Source of the DNA: Zygnema circumcarinatum SAG 698-1b | Lineage: Eukaryota; Plantae; Zygnematophyceae | DNA: 64,000 bases | Direction: 5' to 3' | NCBI GenBank assembly: GCA_037447605.1 | Contig: CM074806.1 | Span: forward strand, 3,410,001 to 3,474,000 | Part shown: positions 2,860-45,806 of the stretch, piece by piece | How the letters are laid out: every line of letters starts with the position of its first letter | Numbering within the stretch: position 1 is the first letter of the stretch | Notes under the pieces: model-generated | The model's input: the letters and a program-made list of their open reading frames with translations, nothing else | Database searches by the model: none | What the model was told of the DNA's origin: nothing | Position numbers and translations under genes: made by a program

Positions 2860-4889
2860 GGGCATGAAACAGGTAGAGGGCTGATACTATTTTTCTTGTA
2901 TCTTGAGTTCGTAGAAGGCTTAAATGCGTTATTTTTCTTTTTGCTACGCCGGATTGGGCGAAGGGGTTGCGGGTATTTCGAAGAAGAGATAGGACGGTTC
3001 TTCTATTTTTATGTCATCAAGTTTTGTACAAGCAGCTCTGCCTTCTAAATTTTGACCTTTGACGTGGGCTTCAATCTGTCACGGTGTTCACGGTGTTCGG
3101 TCTGTCCGGGATGTGTGCATGGAGGTCCCCTTTTAGCGTTCTTTAATATTCCGATATAATGCATTCGTAGCTTTCGCCTTAAGTTCAAGATGAAGCTCTT
3201 TACGTACTGGTATGGTCGAGCGCGCGTCGGTACCGTAATATCTGGCGAAGGTAACTCCCAGTATAACGTTAGTGCTAAGCCCGCTCAAATGGAACAGCGC
3301 TTTGAAATCAATGACCATGAATGTGCAGTCTATTTGTAACACTAAATAAAACAAGGATAACAGGTCGCCAGCCCCACATAGGCAACACAGCTTTGGTGGC
3401 GGTATCGCCAAACTTTCTGCACGCGAAGGGAGTGGTCGGTATGAAGTTGGGGGGCAACGAATGACGAAAAGCTGGGAAAGCTTTTTCTATGGCGAAACGT
3501 GACATGCGCATGTGTGGCGACTTGAATGGAATGCCCGTCACCGCGAGGCTTCAACATGGGACTTCATGTCGCTGTTATACAATGTTGCTGGTGATGTCGC
3601 CGGGGCTTGTGCTGGATGGGCATTAGGACCGGTCAATGCAGTGATCTGGCATTGCCCCGCGCAGGGCAAGTTTGTGTTTCTTTATTTGCTTATTGAGTTG
3701 AGAATGCACTAAAAAAGGCTGGAGAAGCTAAAGTATAAACCATAAATAAAGTGATAAGTTCAGAACAACTTAATCGCTAAAGCGTCTAACTTTCAAATTA
3801 GCACTATTTCGATAAAGTAAAAACGCAAATACCCCCCCCTGAACTCCAAATAAACTAACCACCGAACCCCAACCACCAAATAAATCGAATTCAACTCCAA
3901 AAAAACTACCACCCCCCACCCTCCTACCTATGCTCCAATATATTCCATTGATCTCTTGCTCTCTCCCCCTCTCTCTTCTCTCTCTTCCTCTCGATCTCTC
4001 TCTCTTTGTCTTTGTCGTTTCTCTTTGTATATCTCTCTCGCCCTCTCCCTTCCTCTCTCCCCCTCTCGCTCTCGCTCTCTCGCTCTCTTTCACTCCCTCC
4101 TCTCGCCCTCCCCCAATTCCCCTTCAAATCCACCTTCAGCCACAGGGCAGTGCCAGCTGCCACGGCCCGGGCGGGCTCGTTTGTCGTATCCAACTGAAAG
4201 TCGCCGGCAGCCTAATGCCGTACAGTCCGTCGACTTCAATTTTGAAGCTTCCTGGATGCTGTCCGCAGCCCGCAGTACGGCCGCTGCATGTGCCCGTCGT
4301 CTCGTGCGACTGCCGGCCCTTCCCATGCGCGACATCTGCCGACCCTCCGCCTCTCCCATTGGCGGCCGCTCACAACGATATTTCTCGCACAGAACTGCGT
4401 TCCGTGGTGTGCTGCCAATCGCGAGATATCAGCGAGCCGGCCAGTCGGACAAAAACATCGTACGGCAAAGCCACGTCACCGTCAGTCTGCCTGCCGACAA
4501 CCGCCCGAGGTGAGGTCCGCACCAGAAGACGACAAGAATAGTTCGGCACGTCAGACAACAAAAATCGAGCGGAAGTTTTTTATTTCTTGTCCTTTTCTTC
4601 TTCCACTTCTTCCATATACTGAAGATGTCCGTATGCGGCGTGCCATCCTCCCAGAGAGCGTCAAACTTACCGAAATTTCGACCGGAAGATGCTGATGATT
4701 TTTTTTGACCCAGCGGCCCCCGAAACCGCGAGCGGATATTACCGCGGGACCGGGGCCACGTGGCGCGCGCTCACGGGCTCGCTCCCGCACGCGTGAACCT
4801 CGCGGGGAGGGGCAGGCACTGCGCGCCGGCCGGCGCGACGCCTTAAAGCGGCGCAGAAGCTGCACGAAGGGAAGCAGCTTGCCGGTCGC

Positions 4890-7994: not shown

Positions 7995-13763
<5,769 letters not shown>

Positions 13764-13938
13764 CTCTTCTTCTGTTCTGCCAGCGCTCGCCCTAAACCTA
13801 AAACCAGCCCTAATTCTAACCCTAATCCCAACCCTAACCGCTACCTCCCCACCCCCCTCGTCATCCTGAACCACTTAGTCGAAGGGGAAGCCAAGGGAGG
13901 TGTCTCCCCATCTCGGCTCTCACGTCTCAGAAGCTTCC
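13764..13938. promoter_or_regulatory. Very short bidirectional intergenic region with telo-box-like AACCCTAA repeats between BCKDH E1a and the lumenal protein gene
   Basis: Divergent ATGs at 13763 (-) and 13939 (+); CCTAAACCTAAAACC...AACCCTAATCCCAACCCTAACC at 13790-13838. Confidence 0.6.
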
Positions 13939-18648: not shown

Positions 18649-21600
18649 CTACTGCAACAGCGCGAAGCTCTTGACGCTCTCGCCGAGCATGTTCCGCGCG
18701 GCGGAGGACGCGAGCTCCGTGGCGCGCTCCGTCCCCTGCACGCGCTCGCGCGCTCGGACGAAGCGCGCGAAGAGGCAGTCCGCGCGGAGGAGGCCCGAGG
18801 AGCGGTAGCTCGCCACGCTGCCGTCCAGAAACCCTTCCGCGTCGTCTCCCGGCACCACTTCGGCCCCGAAAACCTCACTGTACTCCAGCTTTTGATTCGC
18901 ACTGCCACCCACGCGTCATTCTCAGAACAACGTGTCAGTCAAATGTATCCTGTGCATAATTGGGCTCTGATAAAATACAAAGCAAAGCACGGCATGACTC
19001 GTTGCAGGTAGGGCGAAATAATGCGAAAGGAGAGGGGTTTCGCTTGATGTCTGTCTGCACTCACAGTCTATCCTTGTGGTCGGAGCGGAAGGTCTGCCCT
19101 AAAACCCCATGCGCATTGTCCGACAAGTCGGCCACCGGCATTTCAAAGTCGAAGTGCACAACGCCGTCCGTGGGGGTCCTCAACATCGCGATTTCTGGCC
19201 GCAATGTGAGCCTCAAACTCAGCACATCCGCGACCTTGATGTGGAACACATCCACAAAGTCATCGCCGCTGCGCCTCTTCGCCGCGAGCCACTTCACTTC
19301 AATGTCGCCATTGGCGCGGACGGCAGAGTCTCCCGCCTGCCCGAGCTCCACATCCTGACCGTCGATCATGAGGCGGCCCAGATAGCCGCCATCGTACTGC
19401 CACCTGGCGCCTTCCCGTGCCGCCAGCAGGATGGTGTGGTGGCCCCAAAGGACGCCGATTTGGCGGATCCATGTGAGGGCCTTGTGCGGGTTGCTGCCCC
19501 ACCGCCCGTAACGGCCGCCATAGAACACGTTGATGTGGAGGTGGGCGTCGCTGACGAGGCAAAAGGTGGTGTTGGGTTCGCCTGCTCGCAATGCACGCAT
19601 CCACATCCATCAACTTTGAAGAATTTGCAATTTCTCACCGCTACCTGTATTACCATTAAGCAATGTTCAAAGGTTTCATGCTGAACACTGAAGAAAAGAT
19701 GGAAACGCAAAAACTGTCAACCTTACATGTTATTACAGATCTTAAAAGCCATACCTGAAAAGTCGAAGCGGGAGCCATCGGCCCCAGTGTAGTGGGGGTC
19801 TCCCACTCCCCCGGGAGAGGGGGCAGACGCGGCGGGGCAGCTCGCGTCCCGGATGGAGGGGGCGTAGCACGCCTGCACGCCCAGGCTGATGTCGGCGGAG
19901 GTGGAAGCCAAGTTCGTGAGAGTCACGGCGCTGATCCATGCGTTACCCTGGAGAGTAGTGATAAGGGGGAGGAAGAGTGAGAGGCAGGGAGACAAATAGG
20001 ACGAGGGAGGAAGAAGGAAGATTGCGTGGGAGGGCAACCAGGAAAGTGGATGGAGAAGGAAGTGTTGAGAGAGGAGGATAAACGAGAGAAAGGTTGGGCA
20101 GAGCGAAAACGAGGCGGAGGGGCGAGGGGCAATACAGGTAAAAAGAATGACTAGATAAAACAGGGAAAGGAAAAAGACGGAAGAGTTAAAAGATTGGAAA
20201 CGAGAAGCGAATAGAGAGTAAAAAAGGCAGAAACTAGGTCGTCAAAGGGTGAGAGACACAAAGGAATAGACAGAGGCCGAAGGAAAAGGAGAAGGAGAAG
20301 CAAACGGAGAAAAAGGCGGTCGAAGAGTAAAACGAATGAGACGCAGAGTGAGTGAGTGCGAGAGAGAAAGGGAGTGAGAGAAAGGGAGTGAGAGAGAGGG
20401 AGCTGACCAGCACGCCTCCGGAGCTGCACTGGCCGTTGTTGAGGATGTTGACGGGGCAGAGCCCGCTGGAGGCCGTCACGTAGCAGCCGTCGATCTGCGC
20501 GGTCGCGATCTGGCCGCTGAGCGGATTGCCGCCCACGAAGAGCGCGCTCAGGAACTTCGCGTTCGCGGAAATGAGCGCCGATGTGCCCGTGGCGCCGCTG
20601 ATGGCGACCTGCGGGCATGCGCGCATGCATCCCCAAAGGTGAGGCGGAGAGAGGCAGGGGGAGGGAGGAAGGGAGGGGGCGAAGAATAGGGAGACGGAGA
20701 GAATCATCGAAATTCAACATTTATGGTCAAGGAACTGATTAACAAAAAAAAAAAAATCCTATACTACAATGAATATTCTCCTATTGAAAACATCACTTTA
20801 TTAGTTTATTTATTGACTTAGCATGATTGTGTTAGTGAGTGGTACATAGTTCATGAAGAGCATGTAGTTGTTTCGGAGTCTAGTTTTCATGCTTGTCTAG
20901 GATCTACACATCAGGTGGAGCATGTGGCGCATTCTGATTGGCCGCTGCATAGGCGCGGAGCGCTGTGATTGGTCGTGTTACGTGGCGCTCGGAGATGTAC
21001 GTGATTGTACGGACGGGGAGCTCCAGAAAACTCGCGGCGTTCCTTACGCCGGAAAATCATTGGCTTGCAAGGCGCGCAGTGGCGTGACGCGACGGAGAGT
21101 GTTCCGGAAGTCACGTCACACTGTGACTGATAAATTACGATGCAAATGAGTGAGCTGTAACCCTTAGTGCAGGCTGCTAGGTGCAGAGTAGAGGCTTGCC
21201 AGTGTGTGGTGAAGCTTTACAGCATAAGGGGGACACTCTTGTAGTGGAGTAGAGAAGCGCAGGAGGGGCTCTTGTTGTGTTCTTGTACTCCGTTTTGAAG
21301 TTAAGAGTTTTCAGCATTTGTGCATTCTCTTATCTTCTGAATCTTCGATCTGTTCATTCATTCTTTGCTTGGGGCAGTCTTTGCTTTGTGAGTGTGATTC
21401 TGTGTTTCCGCAAGGCTGGCGTCTCCTAGTCCAAGGAGTAGTGGGATGTCATCCTCGGAGGGATCCTCTACTAGGACCGGAGGCTCCACATCTACAAGTG
21501 GTATCAGAGCTAAAGACCGAGCAGAAGGTGATGACGATCGGAAGATTGGAGTGCCATTGTTTGATGGCCATAACTACAAGACGTGGAGGTGGCGAATGAA

Positions 21601-24600
21601 GAAAGTGCTGTTGAGCCGAGACCTACTTGGAGTTGTTGATGGCACGGAGGAGAGACCAACCACCGGTGCTGAAGATATCAAGGAGTGGCTTCGAAAGGAC
21701 AGGAAAGCTCAAGCACTTATCGCCTTAACTGTGAAGGATGAGCAGTCGCTTGCACTGCAAGAGTTAGAGACTAGTGCTGAAATGTGGAAGAGTCTAGAGG
21801 ATGTGTATGATGTCAAATCTCATACCACGGTTGTCCACTTGTACTCAGAACTAGGTAATTTGAGAATGTCCGAAGATGAAGAGCTGGCAGATTATATGCA
21901 GAGGTTCGATAGCTTGATGCAGAGGTTTGCCCTTGCAAGTAAGCCGTTGGACTCAGATCATAAGATCAGCGTCTTCTTAGAGGGTCTGCCCAAAAGATTT
22001 GAGTTTGCTGTCATTTCCATTAAGACACTTCTCACTACTGCCAATCTAACCATAAACGAGGTGAAGGGCAGAGTGAGGGAGGAGGATGAAAGGCAGGCAA
22101 AGGCTAAGGTTTCGAGTGACAAGGTGCTGGCGCTAAGGTGGTCGCAGCAAAAGCACAAAGGAGGGGGGAGACCCAAGGTGGACAAGCGCAGCTCGGGACT
22201 GAGTTGCTACAACTGCGGAAAGCCAGGACACGTGAAGACCAACTGCCCGGAGCTGAAGAAGGATAATGCGAGTGGAGCAGGCCCTTCTAAGTTAGCCGCA
22301 AAGGAGAAGGTCAAAGGAGCGTGTCACAAGTGCGGGAAGTTTGGCCACTTCAAGGCAAACTGTCCTGACGGAAATTCAGAGAAGACTCTAATGGCTGCTG
22401 AAGGCGAGTATTCAGAGTTTGCGAATGGAATCCAAGTGCGGGATTATGGATTGAGGCCTTGGCTGATTGATTCGGGAGCATCCAAGCATATGTGCGTGGA
22501 TGAGTCACTTTTCGTGGAGAAGAAGGCGCTGCAGCATGCACGTTCTGTTTATTCTGCCACCGGAGATGGAGTTGAGGTGACGCAAGGAGGATCGGTCGAG
22601 CTGGAGGTACTCAATGGGGGTGTAGGGGCAGTGCTGACCATAGGGAATGTGCTGCACACCCCGGGACTACAGAATAACTTTCTTTCTGTGAGTCAAATCT
22701 GCGAGGAAGGCTGCAAGGTGTGGTTTGATAGAGTGGCGTGCGCAGTAGTTGACGAGAATACCGGGAGGACCCTATGTAGAGGCATGCAAAAGAATGGCCT
22801 TTATTATCTGAATTGGGGTGGGAAGCCGGTGGAGGTGGTCAATTCAGTTGAAGAGGACCCCAAGGTGAGACTCTGGCATCGCAGACTTGGACACCTTGGA
22901 TTCAGAGGTTTGAAGCGCCTTGCAGATGAGAAGTTAGTCAGAGGATTGGATGTGGAAGGTGTTAGGGGAGAAGGACACGGGACTTGTGAAGATTGTGTCG
23001 CAGGAAAAGCTCATAGGCGGCCGTTTGGTCAAGGAGCGGTGGCGCAAATCTCTCGGGAGAGATTGGAGCTGGTGCACACAGACTTGTGCGGCCCTGTTAC
23101 CCCTACAAGCAAAGGTGGAGCTAACTATTTCATCACCTTTCTTGATGATTGCTCAAGGAAAGTATGGGTGAAAACGCTCACCAAGAAATCGGAAGCTTTT
23201 CAGGCCTTCAAGGAGTGGCAGCTGCAGGCCGAGAGGGAGACAGGGATGAAACTAAAAACTCTAAGGTCAGACAATGGTGGAGAGTACACTTCTCACCAGT
23301 TTAGAGATTACCTGAAGTCCCTCGGAGTGAAACATGAGTTCACTGCCCCTTACTCTCCTCAAAGTAACGGAGCTGCTGAGAGGATGAATAGGACGCTAGG
23401 AGATATGGCAAGGACTATGCTGAATGAGTCGCCATTTCCGCTATCGTTTTGGGCTGAGGCGATCACGGCGGCAGCGTATATTCGGAACAGGTGCCCTACA
23501 TCTGTCTTGAAGGATAAAGTTCCGGAGGAAGTGTGGACAGGCAAGAAGCCGACTGTTGAGCACTTTCGAGTTTGGGGCTCAAAGTGCTTTATTCACGTTC
23601 CAAAGCACAAGCAAGCGCAGAAGTTCAGTCCTCGATCTGTGGAAGGATACTTCCTTGGCTACAATGAAGATAGCCAGACTTACCGGATCTGGAACCCAGT
23701 CACAAAGAAGGTGGAAAGGAGTCGTGACATAATTGTGCAAGAATTCCACAAGCATTCAGAGAAGCTGGATGGAGAGAAGGACGTGAACACGAGAAGGCTT
23801 GTGTTTCCATGGGTTCCAGAAGATTCAGGAAGGGCTGAGGAAGCAGCATTACCACGGCCAGATATTCAGCATAGCCCACCGATGGAGCATGTCACTAATC
23901 CGCTAGATTCTGTACCTGAGGAGGGACCGCTTGAGGAGGAAGCACCCGAGGAGGAGGAGCCATCAGCGGACTTGCAGGTGCAGCCAGCAGAAGAGCGAAG
24001 AGAGGAGCCAGGATTCACTCCAAACTATGAAAGGAGGAGTGATCGTCCAACGAGGCAACCTGGTTGGTTGGCAGACTACCATCAACCACCATATTGGAAG
24101 GCAAAAAGGACGAAGAAGGTCAGAACACCTAGTGACTCAGCTGACTTTGCTGGCATTGCTGCATGCATGATGGCTCATATTTCAGAACCTCAGAGTTATG
24201 CGGAAGCTTTGCAGGGTGAGGATGCTGAAAAGTGGAGGACAGCAATAGATAGTGAGCTGAATAGTCTGAAAGAAAATGGAACCTGGAGGTTGGAAGAGCT
24301 TCCTAAGGGTAGGAAAGCTATAGGTTGCAAATGGGTGTTTAAGGTGAAGCGGAAGGCAGATGGGAGCGTAGATCGCTACAAGGCCAGGCTGGTTGCAAAG
24401 GGGTATAGCCAAAAAGAGGGCATTGATTACTCGGAGACTTTTGCACCAGTAGTTAAGTTCAATTCCCTTAGATCACTCATTTCAATTGCAGCAGCGGAGA
24501 GAATGCATGTCCATCAACTTGATATAAAGACTGCATTTCTCTATGGAGATCTAAGTGAGGAAATTTATATGGAGCAGCCGGAAGGTACAGTGGTGGAAGG

Positions 24601-27600
24601 ACAAGAACATCTCGTATGCAGGCTGGTAAAGAGTCTTTACGGCCTCAAGCAAGCACCCCGGATTTGGTACCAGAAGATAGACGATCTTTTACGGAGGAAT
24701 GGGTACAAGCGTTTTGAGTCAGACCACTTTGTCTACAGCAAAGGTATCGGGAAGGAGCTGCTATACGTGGGCATTTACGTGGACGATCTGATCATTGTAA
24801 GTTCCTCCATGCAAAGCATTCAGAGTCTGAAAGATTTGATGAAGGAGAACTTCCAGATGACAGATTTAGGAGAGGCCCAGTATCTGTTGGGAATTCAGCT
24901 CAAGAGGGGGCGTGATGGTAGCTTGTTCCTTTCCCAGGAGAAGTACGCTAAGGATGTCTTAGCAAAGTTTAGAATGGACAAGTGCACTCCATGCACAAGT
25001 CCCATGGATATGTCACAGAGGCTTTCAGAATCAATGTCACCCCAGTCTCAAGAGGAGGTGAAGAAAATGGAGAATGTGCCATACAGATCTGCCATTGGAA
25101 GCCTGATGTACCTGATGATTGGCACGAGGCCAGATCTTGCTAAGGCCGTCAGCGCAGCCAGCAGGTACATGCAGTTCCCTGGGGAGCGGCATTGGGAGGC
25201 GGTGAAGAGAATATTCAGGTTTCTGAAGGGGACTGTGGACTATGGGATTAAGTTTGAGGCAGGGAGTGGAAGTCAAGTGTATGGTTATACGGATGCAGAT
25301 TGGGGAGGGGATGTAGACACTGCTAGATCCACCTCAGGATACGCATTTGTGAACAGCGGTGGAGTTGTGACCTGGAGCTCGAAGCTTCAGGATTCCGTGG
25401 CGCTCTCAAGTACTGAGGCTGAGTATATGGCCGCCTGCCATGCAGCCAAGGAGGCCGTCTGGCTGCAGCAATTCTTCGAAGCGTGTGAGCGGCCCCAACT
25501 CCCCTTGAGGCTGTTAACTGATAACCAGTCTTCTATGACTCTGATGCAGAATCCTGTTTTTCATAAGAGGTCAAAGCATATTAGGATTCAATATCACTTT
25601 GTCCGTGAACTTGTTGTTGAAGGAAGGATAGCTGTGGATTTTGTTCCTACAAAGGATCAAGCAGCTGACATGCTCACTAAGGGGGTCAATGGGGAGACGC
25701 TGTGGAAGAACAGCATGCTTCTAGGATTGGGGCCTCTTAGGAACTAAGTACCAAGAGGGGGAATGTTACTGAGTGGTACATAGTTCATGAAGAGCATGTA
25801 GTTGTTTCGGAGTCTAGTTCGCATGCTTGTCTAGGATCTACACATCAGGTGGAGCATGTGGCGCATTCTGATTGGCCGCTGCATAGGCGCGGAGCGCTGT
25901 GATTGGTCGTGTTACGTGGCGCTCGGAGATGTACGTGATTGTACGGACGGGGAGCTCCAGAAAACTCGCGGCGTTCCTTACGCCGGAAAATCATTGGCTT
26001 GCAAGGCGCGCAGTGGCGTGACGCGACGGAGAGTGTTCCGGAAGTCACGTCACACTGTGACTGATAAATTACGATGCAAATGAGCGGGCTGTAACCCTTA
26101 GTGCAGGCTGCTAGGTGCATAGTAGAGGCTTGCCAGTGTGTGGTGAAGCTTTACAGCATAAGGGGGACACTCTTGTAGTGGAGTAGAGAAGCGCAGGAGG
26201 GGCTCTTGTTGTGTTCTTGTACTCCGTTTTGAAGTTAAGAGTTTTCAGCATTTGTGCATTCTCTTATCTTCTGAATCTTCGATCTGTTCATTCATTCTTT
26301 GCTTGGGGCAGTCTTTGCTTTGTGAGTGTGATTCTGTGTTTCCGCAAGGCTGGCGTCTCCTAGTCCAAGGAGTAGTGGGATGTCATCCTCGGAGGGATCC
26401 TCTACTAGGACCGGAGGCTCCACATCTATGTTAGTGTACATAGTTAGTTCAGATTAGCATGTTTGTGTTGGCGCTTAGTTCCTAGGGGTGTGCTTCTAGG
26501 TGTGACATGTATGGGGACGGACTTACTTCAGCGTGCACGCGGCGGCGAGACCGACCGCGCAACCGTACGGATAGTATGGACCGTACAGACCGNNNNNNNN
26601 NNCGGCTGTGCCTACGAAGCGCATGCGGAAGAAAGCACGAAAGAATGCCCAGGATCATTCTGCATCATTCTCAGGTGACATGGACATGATTGCCCATTGT
26701 TACATGGCCCATGCTGTTGAGCCTCAGACTTACGGGGAAGCTGTTGAGGGGCCAGATCAGATCAAGTGGCAGGAGGCCATTGATAGCGAGTGGAACAGTC
26801 TGATTGAGAATCAGACTTGGCGCCTGGAGAAGCTCCCACCTAGGAGGCGTGCCATCGGCTGCAAATGGGTCTTCAAGGTTAAGAGGAAGGCGGACGGCAG
26901 CATCGATAGGTACAAGGCGCGACTTGTGGCCAAGGGCTACAGTCAGAAGGAGGGGATTGACTACACAGAGACTTTCGCTCCTGTGGTGAAGTTCAACTCC
27001 CTCCGCTCCGTCATTTCTATTGCAGCCGCAAAGGGAATGCATGTCCACCAGTTGGACATCAAGACTGCTTTCTTGTATGGAGATCTTGATGAAGAGATAT
27101 ACANNNNNNNNNNAAGGAGCTCTTGCAGGAGAATTTCCAGATGACTGACCTTGGAGAGGCCCAATATCTCTTGGGGATCCAGCTGAAGAGGGGGCCAGAT
27201 GGTTCGCTATTCCTTTGTCAAAGGAAGTATGCAGAAGATGTGTTGCGGAAGTTCAACATGTGGGAGTGCAGGCCATGCACAAGTCCCATGGAGGCTGGAG
27301 TTCGCTTCACGAAGGAGATGTCCCCGTCTACAGAGGAGGAGGCAAAGGCAATGGCTGGAGTGCCATATCGATCTGCGATTGGGAGCCTCATGTATTTGAT
27401 GACAGGCACGAGGCCTGACCTTGCGAAAGCCGTGAGCACGGCAAGCAGATTCATGGAGAACCCCGGCGAGGAGCATTGGGAAGGAGTCAAGCGTATATTT
27501 CGGTTTCTGAAGGGAACTGTGGATTATGGCCTCAGGTTTGAGAGGGGGACTCGCAGCCGAGTCTATGGCTATACAGACGCTGACTGGGGAGGGGATTTGG

Positions 27601-28460
27601 ATTCATCCCGCTCCACATCTGGATACGTTTTCTTGAATGCAGGTGGGGCCATCACGTGGAACTCCACCTTGCAGTCTTCAGTGGCCCTCTCCAGCACTGA
27701 AGCAGAGTATATGGCAGCTTGCCATGCAGCCAGGGAGTGTGTGTGGCTGCGGAACTTCTTTGGGGAGTGTGAGCGGCCTCAACTCCCCTTTTTACTCTTC
27801 ACGGACAATCAGTCCTCTATTGCTCTAATGGGGAATCCGGTGTTCCACAAGCGGAGCAAGCATTTCCGGATCCAATACCATTACGTGAGACAGGAGGTGA
27901 GAGAAGGACTTGTTAGTATCAAGTTCATTGGAACCAGGGAGTAGGCGGCCGACATGCTGACGAAGGCAGTCAGTGGTGAGACCTTGAGGATTAATTCGGA
28001 TCTCATTGGGCTGGGGCCTCTCAGGAACTAAAGTGCCAAAGAGGGGGAATGTTAGTGTACATAGTTAGTTCAGATTAGCATGTTTGTGTTGGCGCTTAGT
28101 TNNNNNNNNNNGGAGGTCGAGGGTGCCGCTGAAGGAGCCGTCCCAGCACTTGTCGCAGAACAGCGATCCCACAATGGAGCTGCCGCTCTGCGCAACGCGC
28201 ACACAGAAAGGAAATTAGGACCAAAATGGGGGGTTTTAGGGGCTGGAACTATGATACAGTTGTGTCCATTTCATGAAGGTCTAACTGCCAAAAATGTGAA
28301 TACCACGACAAGCCTTTCCACAAGTTTTTACTTCTAGTGCTGAATTAGAATTTGTGCCTTTTGCGAAGCTTGATCGTACTGCGGCGGGCAGAAAGGACTG
28401 GAGCAACGCAGCGCAGAGCAGCCCAACGACCGCCGCCCAACTCCTCCCGTTTGCAGCCAT
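18649..28460 (-). CDS. Secreted protein: signal peptide, Ole e 1-like N-terminal domain and root-cap/LEA-like (vWD-like, GDPH) domain. Exons 28380-28460, 28187 to the gap at 28111, 20408-20608, 19755-19947, 19065-19581, 18649-18901; both copia elements lie between exons 2 and 3
   Basis: MAANGRSWAAVVGLLCAALLQSFLPAA; IVGSLFCDKCWDG; GDPHYTGADGSRFDFSG; FCLVSDAHLHIN; TWIRQIGVLWG; AHGVLGQTFR; YRSSGLLRADCLFARF. The link between the two 5' exons and the rest crosses an N-gap and is inferred. Confidence 0.8.
20830..21496 (+). repeat. 5' LTR of copia element 1
   Basis: Direct repeat of 25764-26428; starts TGTTAG and ends TCTACA; the left flank 5-mer is GATTG. Confidence 0.95.
21446..25747 (+). CDS. 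Copia Gag-Pol polyprotein (Gag with two CCHC knuckles, protease, integrase, RT, RNase H), 1433 aa
   Basis: CYNCGKPGHVKTNC, CHKCGKFGHFKANC, WLIDSGASKHM, HRRLGH..CEDC, SDNGGEY, AERMNRTL, YVDD, YTDADWG; order PR-INT-RT-RH. Confidence 0.97.
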   Translation: MSSSEGSSTRTGGSTSTSGIRAKDRAEGDDDRKIGVPLFDGHNYKTWRWRMKKVLLSRDLLGVVDGTEERPTTGAEDIKEWLRKDRKAQALIALTVKDEQSLALQELETSAEMWKSLEDVYDVKSHTTVVHLYSELGNLRMSEDEELADYMQRFDSLMQRFALASKPLDSDHKISVFLEGLPKRFEFAVISIKTLLTTANLTINEVKGRVREEDERQAKAKVSSDKVLALRWSQQKHKGGGRPKVDKRSSGLSCYNCGKPGHVKTNCPELKKDNASGAGPSKLAAKEKVKGACHKCGKFGHFKANCPDGNSEKTLMAAEGEYSEFANGIQVRDYGLRPWLIDSGASKHMCVDESLFVEKKALQHARSVYSATGDGVEVTQGGSVELEVLNGGVGAVLTIGNVLHTPGLQNNFLSVSQICEEGCKVWFDRVACAVVDENTGRTLCRGMQKNGLYYLNWGGKPVEVVNSVEEDPKVRLWHRRLGHLGFRGLKRLADEKLVRGLDVEGVRGEGHGTCEDCVAGKAHRRPFGQGAVAQISRERLELVHTDLCGPVTPTSKGGANYFITFLDDCSRKVWVKTLTKKSEAFQAFKEWQLQAERETGMKLKTLRSDNGGEYTSHQFRDYLKSLGVKHEFTAPYSPQSNGAAERMNRTLGDMARTMLNESPFPLSFWAEAITAAAYIRNRCPTSVLKDKVPEEVWTGKKPTVEHFRVWGSKCFIHVPKHKQAQKFSPRSVEGYFLGYNEDSQTYRIWNPVTKKVERSRDIIVQEFHKHSEKLDGEKDVNTRRLVFPWVPEDSGRAEEAALPRPDIQHSPPMEHVTNPLDSVPEEGPLEEEAPEEEEPSADLQVQPAEERREEPGFTPNYERRSDRPTRQPGWLADYHQPPYWKAKRTKKVRTPSDSADFAGIAACMMAHISEPQSYAEALQGEDAEKWRTAIDSELNSLKENGTWRLEELPKGRKAIGCKWVFKVKRKADGSVDRYKARLVAKGYSQKEGIDYSETFAPVVKFNSLRSLISIAAAERMHVHQLDIKTAFLYGDLSEEIYMEQPEGTVVEGQEHLVCRLVKSLYGLKQAPRIWYQKIDDLLRRNGYKRFESDHFVYSKGIGKELLYVGIYVDDLIIVSSSMQSIQSLKDLMKENFQMTDLGEAQYLLGIQLKRGRDGSLFLSQEKYAKDVLAKFRMDKCTPCTSPMDMSQRLSESMSPQSQEEVKKMENVPYRSAIGSLMYLMIGTRPDLAKAVSAASRYMQFPGERHWEAVKRIFRFLKGTVDYGIKFEAGSGSQVYGYTDADWGGDVDTARSTSGYAFVNSGGVVTWSSKLQDSVALSSTEAEYMAACHAAKEAVWLQQFFEACERPQLPLRLLTDNQSSMTLMQNPVFHKRSKHIRIQYHFVRELVVEGRIAVDFVPTKDQAADMLTKGVNGETLWKNSMLLGLGPLRN
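21499..21510 (+). other. Primer binding site complementary to initiator tRNA-Met
   Basis: TGGTATCAGAGC 2 nt after the LTR end. Confidence 0.95.
25764..26428 (+). repeat. 3' LTR of copia element 1, lacking its terminal CA
   Basis: Follows the PPT at 25753-25763; matches the 5' LTR up to ...CACATCTA, then switches to element 2. Confidence 0.95.
26429..28101 (+). mobile_element. Second, related Ty1/copia element (element 2), largely hidden by three N-gaps; RT/RNase H fragments with a premature stop at 27942-27944
   Basis: LTR start TGTTAGTGTACATAGTTAGTTCAGATTAGC at 26429 and again at 28050 after PPT AAAGAGGGGGAA; RT motifs CKWVFKVK, RYKARLVAKG and HQLDIKTAFL; ends LGPLRN* like element 1. Confidence 0.93.
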
Positions 28461-37784: not shown

Positions 37785-40700
37785 TCAACATTCAGACCTG
37801 CATGTTTCCTCTAAGATTGTTTGTTTGGCTACATCTGGAACATCTTCCTTGGGATCTTCTGCCTCGCCATTGCCTGCTGGTGGTTGGACTGCCACATCCT
37901 CGCCAGATAGGACTGCCGGTTTCTCCTCACAATCTGCCTGCGCGGTTTTTGGAGGACTATTCATTGCCTCCGAAAAAGCATCGATAAGCTGCTCAGCCAA
38001 GCTCGGCAAGTCCTCTCCCAGCGCTTCAATGAAAACAGTGACGGTACTTTTCTGCTCCGCGGAAGCGTGTACAGTCAGCCAAGAGACCAGCTTTACTTGG
38101 ATTTCCTTGGTCATGTGTCCCTCCTGCATCAGCTGTCGAATCATGCGGATGTTCTTGATCTGCTGTGCCTGCTATTGCCCCCCAACGGAAAATCCGTCAG
38201 ACATATCAATGAGTAGCTGGTCTACTCCTAATGGTAAAGGCCAATTTGCGACAGTCTTTCATAATGTAAAGTCGGTTTAGTTCAGCATTCGGTTTGGTCC
38301 CAGTTCTGGGTCGACTTTGATTGAGTTCGGTTATACATAAAGTCAGTTGGGCAGGGTTGGGTTCATTTCAATCTGATCCACTCAACTCTGTATCGTTTCA
38401 CTTCGGTCAGTTCAATTCGGAAACGTTTGTTTCCCCACAGCTACAGCTCTGTACTGTTGTGTGCAAGACTCACCTTAGAAGCACCAGCAGCATCCATTGA
38501 CGCAGTAAGACTTTCGTCAGGCACTCCTTCTCTTGCACTTGCTTCAGCTCCAGTCTGCGCCCACTGGCAAAGCTGCCATTAGGTCTAGAAACAACGCATC
38601 ATCCTTCCACTGCATTTCCTGCTGCCGTCAGCCCTGCACGCGCAGGATGAATGCCAGCTTCCAGCAGCTCCCATCCATTGAGCTCGAAGGACAATCAAAT
38701 GATTAATCTTTACACAGCAAGCAAGCTTGAAAATGACAGTGTGCAGGTCCTGGATGTTCTATACTTGCAGGCCTCATTGATCCAAACGAATAGACAAATA
38801 AACAAATCTAGTTGAAGAGCCGGGACCAATCCTTTGCCTTCTATCACGTCCAGCGGCAAACCTAAAGCACTGACAGCCGGAGAATTGTAGAGAGTTTCGT
38901 GTTTAGGCTACCGTAGAAGTCACATTTGTTAGCCGAACAACTCACATATACTGAAAAGAATGCTATGACACAACAATGTGCCACGACTTACGTCAACAAT
39001 AGGACCAGAAAATGGTCAGAAATGCAGGAGTTGATAAATACAAAGTATTAATGATCATCTGAATGCCAGTACAAGCTTCCACGAATACACGATAACTGTA
39101 TTTTGGATATTGCACCCGCCAAACAAGCAGGATCACCAGAATAATTGACTTCATGGTTTCCTGATCTCAAGACGAGCACTAATCAACAAAAAGACAAAGA
39201 AGTCGATCAACTCCAAGGATCGAAAGGCGATGTCAACCTTGAGCACTTTCCAGTCCAATCCATCCCTCCAAACTTTGTAACGCAGAACTCAAACCTACTG
39301 AACAAGGGGATTTTCTCAAGTGTTTTCTGAAAGTACGAACAATGCTATCTTCCGTGCAACCATGTCATCCTCGTTAAACTTGACCTGACTAACCCTGTCG
39401 ACCAGCAAAGTGGAATCGGCCATACCTGGTGCTCAGTCTCAGGTGTGACCCGTGCATCTCCATCACCTGCGCTCATGGAACTGTCGGCGGCATTCGCAGT
39501 AAGGTCGGTGCCAACAAGCTGAGACGCTGAAGACACTCCACTGGGGGCTGTAAGCTGAGTAGGCCTTTTTCGTCTCGGTCTTTGTGCTGCAAAAACAATA
39601 TGTTGCACACACGAAGAAAATTCATGGTCAAGAGGAGGAACAGAAGTGTGAGATGATGGAAGAGTGTAAAGATTAGGCATGCTTCCCCGGGAATTCGCAC
39701 GAGCTGAAGCAAAAAACCTTCAACACACTCCTGAAAAAAAAGGGAAAACTCGGGTGGCAACATTGATTGACAAAAACACCAAGACTCATAATCTCATGAT
39801 CTCCTGTTGGAATGCCATATATCAATAGCTGTCATGAACATGTGAGTGTAAACCTTCAAGCACAGAGACGAAGTTTCAAAGTGAAGAAAAATAACACAAA
39901 CCTGACACAGCTGTCTCACATCTGGCCTCTTCCGTTGCAGTTCCCTCCACTCCGGCTGCTGTGACTGCCGCCACTTTAAAGACGTAGACAGTGCCAGGTT
40001 CAAGTCCCGTCACTGTCACAGCAGTCATATAGGGAGGCGTGCACGGCGGAGGCCCATATGTACTATCGCCTACCTTCTTATGCCATACCTTGTAGCCTGT
40101 GATCGCCCCAACACCTCTTCCACTGAACCCATGCGGTGCCTGGTCCCATCATCCATCCATCCATCCAGGCCATAGGTATCATATTCTACGAAAAATACAA
40201 CTATTATTAAGAAGAAGGGAAGTCAAGGCATCTCTGCTTTATGAAACAATGGCAAAAACTGAACAAGGATACGAGGATCTAAATTCAAAGAATAGAGCAG
40301 TATAAGAGCTACCAACAACTCATATGTTGCTCCTTAGAATGAACAATCTTGCCATTCCCCTTATCTGAGTATTCAAACGCGAGGTAACGAAGGTCGCTTA
40401 CTGTCCATTTTACAACAACTGAAGTCGGCCGAATGTCAGCAAATTGCAGCTCTGTTGGTGGAGATAAAGACTGATCAGAATCGTTCGTCTTCACCAACAT
40501 GCCATCATTTTCTCGAGCAGATCCTGTGAAATTGAAAAAGAGAATGATCAAGAATGATCATCACTGAAATTCCTAGAAGTCAAGAAGCACGTAGTTTATC
40601 TCTGCAAGCAAATTCCACCTTGTCAGCTCATAAGAAGATACCCTTTCCAAAGATACACCTAGGCTCAACATTTCATTGCCCAGAGTAAACAGTAAGATAG

Positions 40701-43700
40701 AACTGGAAAATCCGTTTCTCGTCCAATTCAAGTTGGATCAAAAAATTCTGAACAAAAACGCTTCCTTCAAATGAACAAATTCAAAAGACGTATTCACCCG
40801 ATGCCGGTTGGCAGCTTGAACACAGCCATTTCCCCGTGGGAACATCTGCCAATCCCACGCAATCGAGGTGAAACGCTCGTTTGCAGGGCACGCCATCGCA
40901 CATGAGAAGTGTGCCCCCATCGCCACACTGAAAGCATTCCGAATCACTAATATCTCCAGCCTCTGCGTCCTCTGAGATAGCTGGAAATCGCATGTCCTCT
41001 TCGACTTGACTCTCCATATATTCGAGAATGTTGCCCAGAATCGCTTGCACCTGAATCATAGCACTCGTCCATCATCACGTCTAAGAACCCAGGAAGTTCC
41101 TTTATTTATGGCAAAATCACTAAAGAAGGCTTTTGACATACAAAATGGTCCACAACGCAGCAATTTATGAGATTAGTTGCCCAGTATTCAAAACTAGGCG
41201 CTATTTCACAGAACCGTTATTATAAACTGTCTCAACGCAGCAAGTTGTAGATTATCCAGATATCTCGTGGCCAAGAAATCCACAAAAATAAGGTGAATCC
41301 GCATAATCTCTCCCCTTATTGAATGGCCCAGTGCTAGACTTGTTCTACCTGAATTCGCACGCTTCTTTTTGCAATTACCGCACAAATACAGTGTAAAGTG
41401 AATTCAATAATTCGAAAATGCGCATTCCACTAGAAAACTTTGTTTCCCCCAGAACTAGGATCCACCTGGAAAGCCCGTGGCAGAAAGAGTGGAATACCTT
41501 GAGAGCAGCAGAATGGCGCCTGACTGCATCCTTTGCGCCCTGCAAAGACCCGTTCCATCAAGACATTGAGTTGTGCCTACAAAATGCCATCTCTAACCGC
41601 TGCAGCATCACTACTCAGCAAACCGTTTAACGGTTTCTCTCTTCCTTGATGGGCTCTAAAAATGGGTATAGCCATCTGTTCAACTGACAGGGAGCCCAGC
41701 TCTTGACGAACTCAGTTCTTACTAGTTCCTCCATTAAGTGTCTGGCATCCGTGCATATTTCTCAGTTTCTTTAAAGCAGTAGTGACGCTCAAAAATAGGA
41801 AAAGTAGTTCGATTCATCCAAGCCAAAGGGTTTCTTCAGCTGAAGAACTTGGGAAAGGCAAATAAGGTGGAACTACACCTGTGGGAAAGAAATGGAACCA
41901 ATCTCCATTTCCAATGCCTGGACTGCAGCATTGATCTGTTGCAGGCACAGAAAGGGCACAAAGGAAGAACAAAGAAAATGAGAGCGTATACACATACTTG
42001 TCTTCATGTAACAGCGGAAACTTCCTCCACTATTGTTGGACCTCTTTCCGCTGAAGCAGCAAAACTACGTTAGAAAAACTCCATTTAACTTCTATTTGAT
42101 ATGTCTATCATATGAGTTGTACAAGCACCTTTAGGACGAACAATACAACAAGGAAATACACCGTCTTTATGAAAGCAAGATGCTTAAGAGGGGACTAGAG
42201 AAGTTTGCTTTTATCTATCTGACAGTTCAATTGAATTTGACTTCACTCGCACATGTCTGCAGTACTTGCAAAAGCCAGACAGTCTATTTCCTGCAATAGA
42301 AAGAAAAAAAAGCTTTTCATTCTAAGATCGGCTTCAGAAGGAAAGGAGAAATAGTTTGGTCTCTCGTTGCCCTGAAAGAGAAGTATCAAAACTAGCGGGA
42401 CGTACGTGTTGCATTAATTAGCACCGAAAGTACAAACTCAAGAAGTAACTCTCTCATATAGCGGTTACTATTGTGGAGTCTGGGCATCAACTTGGTCTGA
42501 CATACTCTCAGCACCTCTCTGTTACATTCCACTTTTCTTCTACGTGAAAAAAACGGAAAGGCTGCGAGATACAGAATTAAGAACTCAAAAAATAAGGGCA
42601 CACGGGAAGCTCCATAAGTCTTACCTGTAGGCTCAACGATTGGAACCTTTCTGAGCCTTTTAGCAGACGCTGTGCTAGATGGAGCTTAAGCCGCAGAATC
42701 TCAACTATTCGCGCCTCATGGGCTGCCTCCAAGATCTCTCGAATGGACCTGTTCAATGCAATGCAGACTTCAGGATGTGCATGGGTAAGGCCAAATATAC
42801 ATGTGGAAAATAATACGACTATGACGCATCGCCATCATTGAGTACAAGTACAATGCAGATGTACTTCTTTAAACCTATTTTAGAAGAAGATGCTAAAGGC
42901 TATAAGGATCATCGGTTGCATAAGGAGCCTCCAGTTCCGAGATCACCAAATGGTTCGAGGCAACCTAAGTTTCCCTAGACTTTCCACTTTCCTCTCCATT
43001 CCCACCCCGACCACCCCTTTCCACCATCAGTAATGAGAGCAATATACCTATACAACCTATTGCTTTTGCCTTCCATAGGGCATCTACGGCAGTGATTAGC
43101 ATCAGGTTTGACGAGTCAATGCGGCAGAAATGCATGGACACCTGCCGTCTTGGACCAAAGTAAAACAAAATCACTGTATCCAGCGAATAAGAAGCCCTGT
43201 TATCGCAAATACATCAGCAACCAGAACTGCTATATAAATTTCCAAAAAATTGATTTATTCAGTTAGTAACCATCGCCCTCTTTCAAAGATCGTATGATAA
43301 CAAAATCGCACTAACCAGAAGTAGCAGAGAATTTCGGCACTATCCCTACGTCCACACCTGAGCAGGCTGACAGTTGTTCCACAAGCCCCACAGCGATAAC
43401 TCGCGTCCAATGTAAGAGGGCGCCCTTCAACGTGAGCCGAAACACCTGCAAGCTGGCGGTTGCACGCACACTCCAAATGGACCCAAAGTCTGCATCCTGA
43501 TTTTGGACATCGAATCCATTCCCCCGAGCCATCTTTGGTTCCGCTTGACTGAAAACAACAAGCACAATAGGCAGTAATAAAGGGTTAAGGGTGCAAATCA
43601 AAGAGGGTGGCATACAGGTCTTCACATCATTATCGCCAGCAGTATCTGCAAAACATCCTAGAAGTGCTGGTGTTCTCAGTCTCAGAAAGATCGCCGTTGT

Positions 43701-45806
43701 TCTTAGCACACCTTTTCCATAGATAAACACCTGACCCTTATCAACAACATTAAATACCGACAGTTAACATCAGCAATACGGACGAAAGTTCACCTATGCT
43801 GGTCACAGAAACCATGCACGCCTTTCAATACCACCAATGATTTCGCAACTAATTCAGGTAAACTGCCTAGCTCACTTGCTTGCTCTTGTTCAGCATTATG
43901 TATTTCAGATACAGTCATTTCGAGGAAAGCGCTCGGCTTAGTATATCCAGCTCCTGAAGAAACAGCTTAGATTAGTAACTTACTTGATTGCAAACATAAC
44001 AGTCGCAATTGGTACAGAACTCTTCATCTTCTGCTAATACCCGTCCACAACCTGAAGGACATATGCCATGGGGATAGTGTGACTCGTCTTGCACTCGCAT
44101 CACTCGATGCAACATTTCTGTGTCTTGCATCTTGTTCCTAATTCTTGCACGCTGCCTTCGAAGGGCCTCCATGCCTGATGGAGTAGGAGGGAGGGACTCA
44201 GATAGAGGAGAACCCCTCGAATCCAAGGAGATATTTCCACCAGTTCCTGAGCGAACATAGCCAGACACACTTAACTTTTGCTTGCCGTTTGTTCGGTTGC
44301 CACGAGAATTCATGTCCATACTTCCATACATTCCTATTACATGGGAAAGCGATCCAGATGACTTTAGCTTCTCGTGACCGCTCACTACAGGAGATGTCCC
44401 CATTTCATTAGCCTCATAGCCTGGTACAGTCTGTTCTCCTTCGAGAACTGCTCCTTGAGCTGTCCAATCACCTGTCCTGACAGTCCCAGCATTGAACGCC
44501 ATTCGCTGATTGTTCATAGGTGGATCTTCAGGATAGACCCATTGGTTACTCATGCCCATTGATCTAGGACCCGCCATCACATCATACACATGATTGGAAG
44601 GACTGCTTGAATACAGCTGGGATGCCATGTCCACATCTACTTGATTCATAAGAGTATAAGCGCCATTCATCGTCATCACATCTCCACCTCCCTCTTCCTC
44701 TGCAGAAGTCTCATACTCCTCGGAGCCAACTCCTGGCGACTCTGAGCTCGCTCCTTGAGTTATCGGAAAACCGCCAACATGGTAGCCACTCTCCTGGTCA
44801 GGTTTCAGATGAGACAACCTGGGAGCCCGCTGGTTGTATGGACCTTTCCCTGCAAACACCTGCATACCGCTCAATGCACGTCTATAAGTGTGATTGAAAG
44901 GCTTCAAGCACAAGCTTGCTGCTGATCCAGAGAAACAGTTAACATTTTGCTTGTAGAGAATGTCGCAATAATCATAACATGTACTAGCAAGCAATGATCG
45001 AAGATCATACCTTAAATAGCCGGCTCATAAGGTGCAGCTTGCTGAGTTTGTGTTTCACATAATTCATGCCAGTCTCCTGCCTCAACATCTCACATATATC
45101 CAAATTGCTCAGGTTGTGAAGCATTTTTGTACTGTGCCAATCTCCATTGGCTGCAAATCGAACCAGCCCCCCTTGCCTCTTCGGTCAGGGAAAGGCTTCA
45201 AGCCAAGAAGTAGGTCAATGCAACTTACGGACATGCTCTGCGGGGTGCTCATGGACAATTTTTTATGGAAGGCACCAACTTTGGAGGATGTCGCCACTAA
45301 ACTAAGTTTAAGAATAGTATCGGCGGTAAACCACAAAAAAGAATTTTTAATGGTTACAGATACGTCACACTGTCATTCCAAAAACGATACACTAAAAACT
45401 CTTGCGCGCTCCAAAGATAGAGTCCTTCAAACTATTTCCAAGACCAGATTCATATGCTTGCCTCAATAACGAGCCATTTACTTTATAGGTGTGTCTAAAA
45501 TAAAGTTCAGGAAAAGCATTCCTGGTATGAGGTTCAGGCACAGCAGCTCAGACCTGCAGCAACGATGACATGCCTAGGGGGGAAAACTCCCATTCCAGCA
45601 GCAGCTGCCCTTCTCCTTTTCTTCCCTTTCTTCGCTTTCCTTAAATCCTCTGTGTCCGCAGGAGTCCTCTTCGCCATGGCTGCCTGGTAAGTAGGGACCT
45701 TCACAACAGCTGGCGCATTCTCTGTTCTCACTACTGCCGCTTCCTGCTGAGCCGTGGAACCACCCATGGCTGCTCGCCGCTTAGCAGCTCCTGTCAGGGA
45801 GGTCAT
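37785..45806 (-). CDS. VIN3/VRN5-like (VEL family) PRC2 accessory protein: VIN3-type zinc finger/PHD, four-helix bundle, an extra canonical PHD, FNIII and C-terminal VEL domain. Recognised exons include 45554-45806, 43984-44849, 43358-43548, 42625-42748, 41879-41935, 40798-41050, 40402-40523, ~39920-40070, 37785-38168; some internal exons unresolved
   Basis: EEFCTNCDCYVC / EWIRCPKSGCRLWVHLECA...LDASYRCGACG; EILRLKLHLAQRLLKGSERF; LQFADIRPTSVVVKW...GLEPGTVYVFKV; IRQLMQEGHM...KLVSWLTVHA...VTVFIEAL..DLPSLAEQLIDAFSEA (VEL). Confidence 0.88.

Follow-up and report, generated by a model that had tools for sequence, protein, structure and literature searches.

The window analyzed here is a stretch of 64,000 nucleotides from the zygnematophycean alga Zygnema circumcarinatum SAG 698-1b (assembly GCA_037447605.1, contig CM074806.1, positions 3,410,001 to 3,474,000), and all positions given below are counted from its first letter. 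On its minus strand lies a single transcribed gene of the VIN3/VEL family, in which a canonical PHD finger, here called PHD2, is encoded in frame between the four-helix bundle and the FNIII domain. The gene model has 13 exons and 973 codons (Table 1). It was built by joining the exons supported by RNA; the two 5′ junctions were placed with the help of a homologous protein (P0002, described below) together with GT/AG sites, and for exons 1–3 we thus infer the placement from homology with P0002, not from reads. The reading frame is open through every junction. The predicted protein starts with a basic stretch and a conserved N-terminal motif; then come a long disordered region, a zinc finger with a VIN3-type PHD finger, the four-helix bundle, an acidic linker of ~20 residues, PHD2 (I595–C641), FNIII, a second linker, the VEL domain and an acidic tail. 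PHD2 follows the last bundle helix and the acidic linker within one exon, exon 8.

A preliminary description of this DNA, made from the sequence alone, had proposed that 40798–41050 encodes a complete Cys4-His-Cys3 PHD finger and that a VIN3-type finger, an FNIII domain and a VEL domain belong to the same gene. Both proposals held. The peptide VQAILGNILEYMESQVEEDMRFPAISEDAEAGDISDSECFQCGDGGTLLMCDGVPCKRAFHLDCVGLADVPTGKWLCSSCQPAS is the minus-strand translation of 41050–40798, and its second half is a complete finger of this type, with all eight zinc ligands present (C600, C603, C612, C617, H622, C625, C638 and C641 in the 973-residue numbering). In Pfam, exon 8 matched PF23011 (PHD-1st_NSD; E-value 4.7e-12, 46.3 bits, cut-off 27) and PF00628 (PHD; E-value 3.9e-7, 30.4 bits, cut-off 24). 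A chance pattern of Cys and His residues was rejected, since both scores exceed the curated cut-offs. The family-typical domains also scored above their Pfam cut-offs: exon 4 matched PF07227 (PHD_Oberon; E-value 1.5e-8, 35 bits, cut-off 28.8), exon 10 matched PF00041 (fn3; E-value 1.4e-8, 35.2 bits, cut-off 25) and exon 13 matched PF23380 (VIN3_C; E-value 3.3e-11, 43.5 bits, cut-off 27).

Five public sequencing runs each contained over half of the words sampled from the 8.2-kb gene region, and contigs of four of these, from two studies, were aligned on 38100–44099. The RNA label of the runs is a guess only, but the runs are shown to be RNA-derived by contigs that lack the introns and have canonical splice ends. 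Nine joints were obtained from the contigs, all reading CT..AC on the plus strand and therefore GT..AG on the gene strand, and these dinucleotides were confirmed. The tenth intron (40140–40401), likewise GT..AG, was visible in contig 21 of run X4, having been dropped from the joint table by a short repeat. This contig (1635 nt) leads from the four-helix bundle via PHD2 and FNIII towards the VEL exon, and contig 11 of run X2 (2370 nt) extends from FNIII and PHD2 back into the 5′ exons. The exon encoding PHD2 is thus present in transcripts of one gene with an open frame. The preliminary description had further expected this exon to be spliced directly between 41879 and 40523. Its borders and the join to 40523 were borne out; on the other side, a 42-nt exon (41539–41498) intervenes before 41879. 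Weak contigs also cover the introns, and these represent pre-mRNA or DNA. In run X2, the last 30 letters of a low-depth contig, at 40389, are GC-rich (TCCGGGACGG...) and do not match the window; this is probably a chimeric contig end.

The order of domains places the protein in the VIN3/VEL family. Arabidopsis VIN3, VRN5 and VEL1 share with it an N-terminal motif, the zinc finger, atypical PHD finger and four-helix bundle, then FNIII and a C-terminal VEL domain, in that order; the algal protein differs by the long disordered insert ahead of the zinc finger. The tripartite PHD superdomain was recognized from the PF07227 match of exon 4, from 62–74% identity to P0002 and from the match of P0002 to the VIN3 structure 7QCE; FNIII follows this superdomain, and the VEL domain stands at the C-terminus. 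The latter gave a gapless alignment with the crystal constructs of Arabidopsis VIN3 and VEL1 (E-value about 4e-10). Three residues named as polymerization residues in Arabidopsis, the head residues R554 and R556 and the tail residue I575 (PMC7614096), correspond to Gln, Lys and Val in the algal VEL domain. The equivalent of R554, a head residue that belongs to the polymerization-dead RR>AD mutant of Arabidopsis VIN3, is Gln in the window protein and Arg in P0002, and that of the tail residue I575 is Val in the window protein and Phe in P0002. VEL domains of the algae Chara and Spirogloea are reported to polymerize (PMC7614096), and orthologues from these two algae have been used in alignments and polymerization assays (PMC9640981, PMC7614096).

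Table 1. Exons and features of the VIN3/VEL-family gene (positions in the window).
Feature	Position	Strand	Description and evidence
Exon 1	45554..45806	-	Start codon 45806; basic KKGKKRRR stretch; ends PRHVIVAA; GT donor and in-frame join to exon 2 reproduce PRHVIVAAANGDW of P0002; junction inferred from homology
Exon 2	45011..45150	-	Conserved N-terminal motif (NGDW...LSKLHLMSRLFK); AG/GT borders; junctions inferred
Exon 3	43984..44859	-	Long low-complexity region and zinc-finger start of VIN3 PHD superdomain (CPSGCG...CDCYVCNQ, about 44061-43984); 3′ junction 43984|43548 found in four runs; 5′ border inferred from P0002 alignment
Exon 4	43358..43548	-	Atypical VIN3-type PHD finger; PF07227 PHD_Oberon; both junctions in RNA
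Exon 5	42625..42748	-	Four-helix bundle, helices 1-2; RNA junctions
Exon 6	41879..41935	-	Four-helix bundle, helix 3 (INAAVQALEMEIGSISFPQ); RNA junctions
Exon 7	41498..41539	-	42 nt, 14 codons in frame (GAKDAVRRHSAALK), inside four-helix bundle; junctions 41538|41878 and 41048|41496 (cut offsets) in 4/4 runs, GT..AG; peptide identical in P0002
Exon 8	40798..41050	-	253 nt; last bundle helix (41050-41009), acidic linker, extra PHD finger; both junctions in four runs; together with neighbouring exons on X4 contig 21 and X2 contig 11
PHD2 core	40811..40951	-	Residues I595-C641, Cys4-His-Cys3; Pfam, PDB matches, AlphaFold2, P0002 identity
Exon 9	40402..40523	-	Linker and first FNIII strand (from about 40461); RNA junction 40522|40797; weak fn3 start match; junction to exon 10 from X4 contig 21, GT..AG ends confirmed
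Exon 10	39902..40139	-	Main FNIII part; PF00041 fn3; RNA junctions
Exon 11	39426..39586	-	Disordered linker with basic stretch (RPRRKRP); RNA junctions
Exon 12	38474..38554	-	Linker; RNA junctions
Exon 13	37785..38168	-	VEL polymerization domain (about 38159-37962), acidic tail, stop 37787-37785; PF23380

Conservation of the layout and the surrounding window

An exhaustive HMMER search with exon 8 over 1.84 billion cluster representatives returned 2461 matches. Among the best 150 of these, which would miss VEL proteins of greater divergence in PHD2, one protein also matched the rest of the gene model. This protein, P0002 (1039 residues), is encoded by a single open reading frame (ORF) on a 3.9-kb transcript contig (L001) of run SRR8128907. 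It has the same order of domains as the window protein: PHD_Oberon (PF07227), PHD-1st_NSD/PHD (PF23011), fn3/Fn3_VIN3 (PF23376) and VIN3_C (PF23380). Its residues 451–634 matched the VIN3 PHD superdomain structure 7QCE over the full length (E-value 7.5e-13), and structures of VEL domains were matched as well.

The two proteins are ~52% identical over aligned residues, or 43% when gapped columns are counted, and this identity is unevenly distributed. It reaches 93% in the N-terminal motif of exon 2 and 74% in both the four-helix bundle and PHD2, followed by 68% in FNIII, 62% in the zinc finger plus the VIN3-type PHD finger and 51% in the VEL domain, with only 24–32% in the linkers. The first 20 residues of PHD2 (ISDSECFQCGDGGTLLMCDG), a stretch corresponding to the H3-binding face of related fingers, are identical at 20 of 20 positions. 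PHD2 is conserved like the other folded domains and unlike the linkers and is therefore constrained in the manner of a folded, functional domain. The G+C content at third codon positions is 47% in the window gene and 39% in the coding sequence of P0002, a difference which suggests that the two come from different species. Word-index protein searches with P0002 residues 440–645 and 440–770 returned only P0002 or nothing, the index (shared 5-mers plus a length window) being blind at such divergence, and the same search with residues 371–1021 was swamped by titin-like fn3 repeats.

No part of the protein is better conserved than the N-terminal motif (LSNLDICEMLRQETGMNYVKHKLSKLHLMSRLFK; 45011–45150), and flowering-plant VEL genes have a similar motif (ORF 4196–4624 of locus L008, see below). 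There is no Pfam model for it, and the VEL literature examined gives no function for the motif.

The preliminary description had stated that the VEL proteins of angiosperms lack the extra finger, and the flowering-plant genes we recovered agree with this. A metagenome scan with the VEL alignment gave seven plant VIN3-like loci, all flowering-plant-like; the same kind of scan with the exon-8 alignment gave no match. In a Brassicaceae VEL1-type locus (L008), the zinc finger, PHD finger and bundle lie in one ORF ending ...VQKLCSSALESLETIATTPPDVAALPSPRSSKMQQ, and the next exon starts the FNIII domain; a Pfam scan of this locus gave PHD_Oberon, Fn3_VIN3 and VIN3_C only, with no extra PHD. A second locus (L002) has the same arrangement, going straight from the bundle to FNIII without an extra PHD. 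The nearest clusters in the ESM Atlas were streptophyte VIN3-like proteins of 649–740 residues with PHD_Oberon, Fn3_VIN3 and VIN3_C; at most three Pfam families are displayed per cluster, so an extra PHD could not be reported there.

Compared with an Arabidopsis-type VEL gene, the algal gene has ~70 extra residues, the acidic linker and the canonical PHD finger, at the 3′ end of the exon in which the bundle is completed, where flowering-plant genes have a short Pro/Ser linker. The intron before FNIII is in phase 1 in both the alga (40798|40523) and L008 (5266|5348), and it lies 27 and 23 codons, respectively, ahead of the Phe of the first FNIII strand. This phase-1 intron may be conserved, marking the place where the finger was inserted or deleted. 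If the intron is indeed the same in both, PHD2 would represent an insertion or deletion, in either direction, of ~70 codons at an exon's 3′ end, rather than a shuffled exon.

Elsewhere in the window, a pure (GA)n microsatellite fills the 1.66 kb at 11889–13551; it has about 833 copies (96% matches) and accounts for the extreme purine skew of the 12–14 kb bin. Directly after it, at 13792–13837, is a short degenerate array of plant-type telomere-like (CCCTAAA-like) units. The region 18649–28460 contains an open frame of 1433 codons on the plus strand (21446–25747).

Structural class of PHD2

The eight zinc ligands of PHD2 and W636 are invariant in an alignment of 55 sequences, and the ligand spacing is canonical. 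By sequence, the nearest solved fingers were NSD2/NSD3 PHD5 (single-finger E-values of about 1e-11 to 1e-13) and AIRE PHD1 (6e-11); other PDB matches were CHD4 (PHD2), PHF12, BHC80/PHF21A and WSTF, as well as the ATXR5 PHD. An AlphaFold2 model built from 55 related fingers had a PHD fold, with a mean predicted local distance difference test score of 81. When this model was searched with Foldseek, NSD2 (9gbf), NSD3 (4gnd–4gng) and AIRE (1xwh/2kft) came first, followed by BHC80, TRIM66, CHD4/5, TRIM24/33 and MOZ. Outside P0002, the closest fingers were scattered across eukaryotes and came from a chlorophyte, an oomycete and a glaucophyte, as well as from an IDM1-like protein of Impatiens; no donor gene can be named.

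NSD2/NSD3 PHD5, the best match in both sequence and fold, has the same CX2C-X8-C-X4-C spacing and a four-residue loop between the third and fourth cysteines (CDGVPC in PHD2, CDRKFC in NSD). PHD2 differs from it in lacking the adjoining C5HCH finger, in a last ligand pair that is CxxC and not the CxxHxC continuation, and in its host protein, which is not a SET methyltransferase. With AIRE PHD1 and BHC80 (PHF21A), PHD2 shares the motif ...C..C.DGG.L..CD...AFH..C....P.G.W.C..C, differing by two extra residues between the third and fourth cysteines.

AIRE PHD1 has a described binding site for the tail of histone H3 unmethylated at lysine 4 (H3K4me0). In that finger, D297 is joined to K4 by a salt bridge, and the D297A substitution raises the dissociation constant from about 5 to about 150 µM (~25-fold weaker binding); D312 pairs with R2, and D312A abolishes binding; the carbonyls of P331–G333 hold the N-terminus of H3, and A317 replaces the Trp of the aromatic cage (PMC2261226). 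Using the numbering in that paper and the ungapped spans of the PDB alignments, we infer that D312 corresponds to D613 in PHD2, P331–G333 to P632–G634 and A317 to A620 (in KRAFH). All of these are kept. The R2-binding Asp, the P-x-G that anchors A1 (P632 and G634, followed by W636) and a small residue at the place of the cage Trp are thus all present and fit a reader of this kind. The preliminary description had assigned PHD2 to the AIRE-PHD1/BHC80/CHD4 class on the basis of its motif and of acidic residues ahead of the first cysteine. In sequence and predicted fold these fingers are among the closest, together with NSD2/3 PHD5; the acidic residue expected two positions before the first cysteine is replaced by Ser598. 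Judged from these alignments, the assignment to the H3K4me0-reader class is right in outline, and the residue predicted to be most responsible for selectivity is non-canonical.

Predicted function of PHD2 and its alternatives

VEL proteins are the best-studied plant accessory factors of Polycomb repressive complex 2 (PRC2). It is an open question what brings them to chromatin, given that histone tails are not bound by the PHD superdomain of these proteins: as the preliminary description had also noted, the atypical VIN3 PHD has been reported not to bind H3 (PMC9640981). For the algal protein, we propose that PHD2 would act as a docking module for the N-terminal tail of H3, and that avidity provided by the VEL domain would retain the protein, along with associated PRC2, on chromatin free of H3K4me3. 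We give this proposal an even chance of being right. In this mechanism, the H3 tail would add a strand to the first β-strand of PHD2 (GTLLMC), as in NSD3 PHD5, AIRE PHD1 and BHC80, with A1 anchored by P632–G634 and W636 and with R2 paired to D613. Since PHD2 has no aromatic cage, K4me3 would be disfavoured, and some degree of preference against this mark is probably a property of the finger. Head-to-tail polymerization of the VEL domain could then turn a weak contact of single fingers into avid binding, so that the protein and whatever PRC2 it carries would stay on chromatin without H3K4me3. The polymerization reported for algal VEL domains (PMC7614096) makes such avidity plausible. Flowering-plant VEL proteins, whose own superdomain is not histone-binding, are without such a module.

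There is a plant precedent for this logic. The PHD of ATXR5 reads unmethylated K4, so that H3K27 methylation avoids loci with H3K4me3 (PMC5499861). ATXR5/6, which are H3K27 monomethyltransferases with an H3K4me0-reading PHD (PMC5499861), and the metazoan Polycomb-like proteins, which are PRC2 accessory factors with Tudor and PHD readers (PMC8788455), share with the algal protein, as proposed here, only the functional logic of an H3K27-methylating enzyme or its accessory factor with an inbuilt reader for the presence or absence of active marks. Their architectures are unrelated and lack the VEL, FNIII and four-helix bundle domains; the likeness is one of analogy and not of homology.

Several points weigh against the proposed docking function. 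The equivalent of AIRE D297 is Ser598 (in SDSEC) in both the window protein and P0002. Of 129 related fingers, 97 (75%) have Asp or Glu at this position and 11 (8.5%) have Ser; Asp or Glu also stands there in NSD2, NSD3 and CHD4 (PHD1/2), with Asp in NSD2/NSD3 PHD5. A resemblance to the NSD fingers does not by itself imply specific H3 reading: the PHD5-C5HCH module of NSD1, 61–64% identical to those of NSD2/3, binds H3 only weakly and non-specifically (PMC4838375), and resemblance alone therefore cannot settle the function of PHD2. Binding of PHD2 to H3 is itself a prediction. The association with PRC2 is assumed from Arabidopsis, whose VEL proteins are the only ones for which it is known (PMC7615239). 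Finally, the window protein has Gln in place of the Arabidopsis VEL head residue R554.

The NSD1 module also suggests a different kind of function: it binds a zinc-finger partner, Nizp1, at about 4 µM (PMC4838375). PHD2 might likewise be a protein–protein interaction finger that recruits a zinc-finger or chromatin partner, or it might fold back, together with the acidic linker, onto the basic patch of its own superdomain. Such a role would fit the NSD-type PHD5 being the top match in sequence and fold, the replacement of the canonical K4-contacting Asp by Ser, and the conserved basic surface documented for VEL PHD superdomains (PMC9640981). However, the features that hold the N-terminus of H3 (D613, P632-x-G634-x-W636 and the β1 strand) are intact and invariant in both homologues, and the binding of Nizp1 by the NSD module requires the adjoining C5HCH finger, which is absent from the algal protein. 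We regard this explanation as possible, though on the unlikely side. PHD2 could also bind the H3 tail and read something other than K4me0: only the free N-terminus and R2, irrespective of the K4 state; K9me3, which NSD3 PHD5-C5HCH and CHD4 PHD2 recognize; or some variant or modified residue. The Ser two positions before the first cysteine removes the salt bridge that lies behind the K4me0 preference of AIRE and BHC80, the NSD3 module has been described as preferring H3K9me3 (PMC4838375), and the structures 4gng and 2l75 were among the fold matches. Recognition of K9me3 by NSD3, though, involves the second, C5HCH finger that the algal protein is missing, and the acidic residues that flank Ser598 (D597 and E599) might still disfavour methyl-lysine. 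Taken together, a different H3 reading of this kind seems unlikely to us.

Both of these explanations, like the proposed docking function, presuppose that the two-PHD protein is made. The alternative would be that exon 8 stems from another gene, is an optional cassette or reflects an artefact of assembly or annotation. It is true that the evidence from RNA comes as assembled contigs, in which minor isoforms can go unnoticed, and that weak contigs lie over the introns. On the other hand, the same junctions recur in four runs belonging to two studies, several exons on either side of exon 8 are spanned by single contigs, and the independent transcript behind P0002 encodes the same layout in one ORF. 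Moreover, exon 8 has a length (253 nt) that is not a multiple of three, so that skipping it would shift the frame, and it also encodes the last bundle helix, so that skipping would truncate or break the superdomain. We consider an artefact or cassette extremely improbable, and a separate gene or cassette exon for PHD2 was rejected on the evidence of the shared junctions, the multi-exon contigs, the frame and the layout of P0002.

The gene thus encodes a genuine variant of the VEL architecture that is both expressed and conserved, and the function predicted for it is plausible. It appears to be undescribed: our literature search found no mention, in the text of papers, of a second PHD finger in any VEL protein. 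A further-reaching scenario, which we think doubtful, is that the ancestral streptophyte VEL protein was a histone-reading PRC2 accessory factor, in which an H3K4me0-reading PHD and a polymerizing VEL domain would have restricted Polycomb nucleation to unmarked chromatin through avidity. Land plants would later have deleted the finger within the exon, immediately upstream of the conserved phase-1 intron, and handed targeting to other factors. If true, this would explain why the VIN3 PHD superdomain is blind to histones.

If PHD2 should prove to be confined to one algal order, it would be a further case of the accretion of PHD domains that is common among chromatin proteins and would be of modest interest; if the finger is ancestral, the account of how the land-plant VEL architecture originated changes. 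An algal relative that carries a conventional PHD finger of the H3-tail type beside the polymerization domain is a natural experiment. If PHD2 does read unmethylated H3K4, the combination of reader and polymer would represent one evolutionary solution for Polycomb nucleation, and the algal protein would provide a simple recombinant system in which such avidity could be tested.

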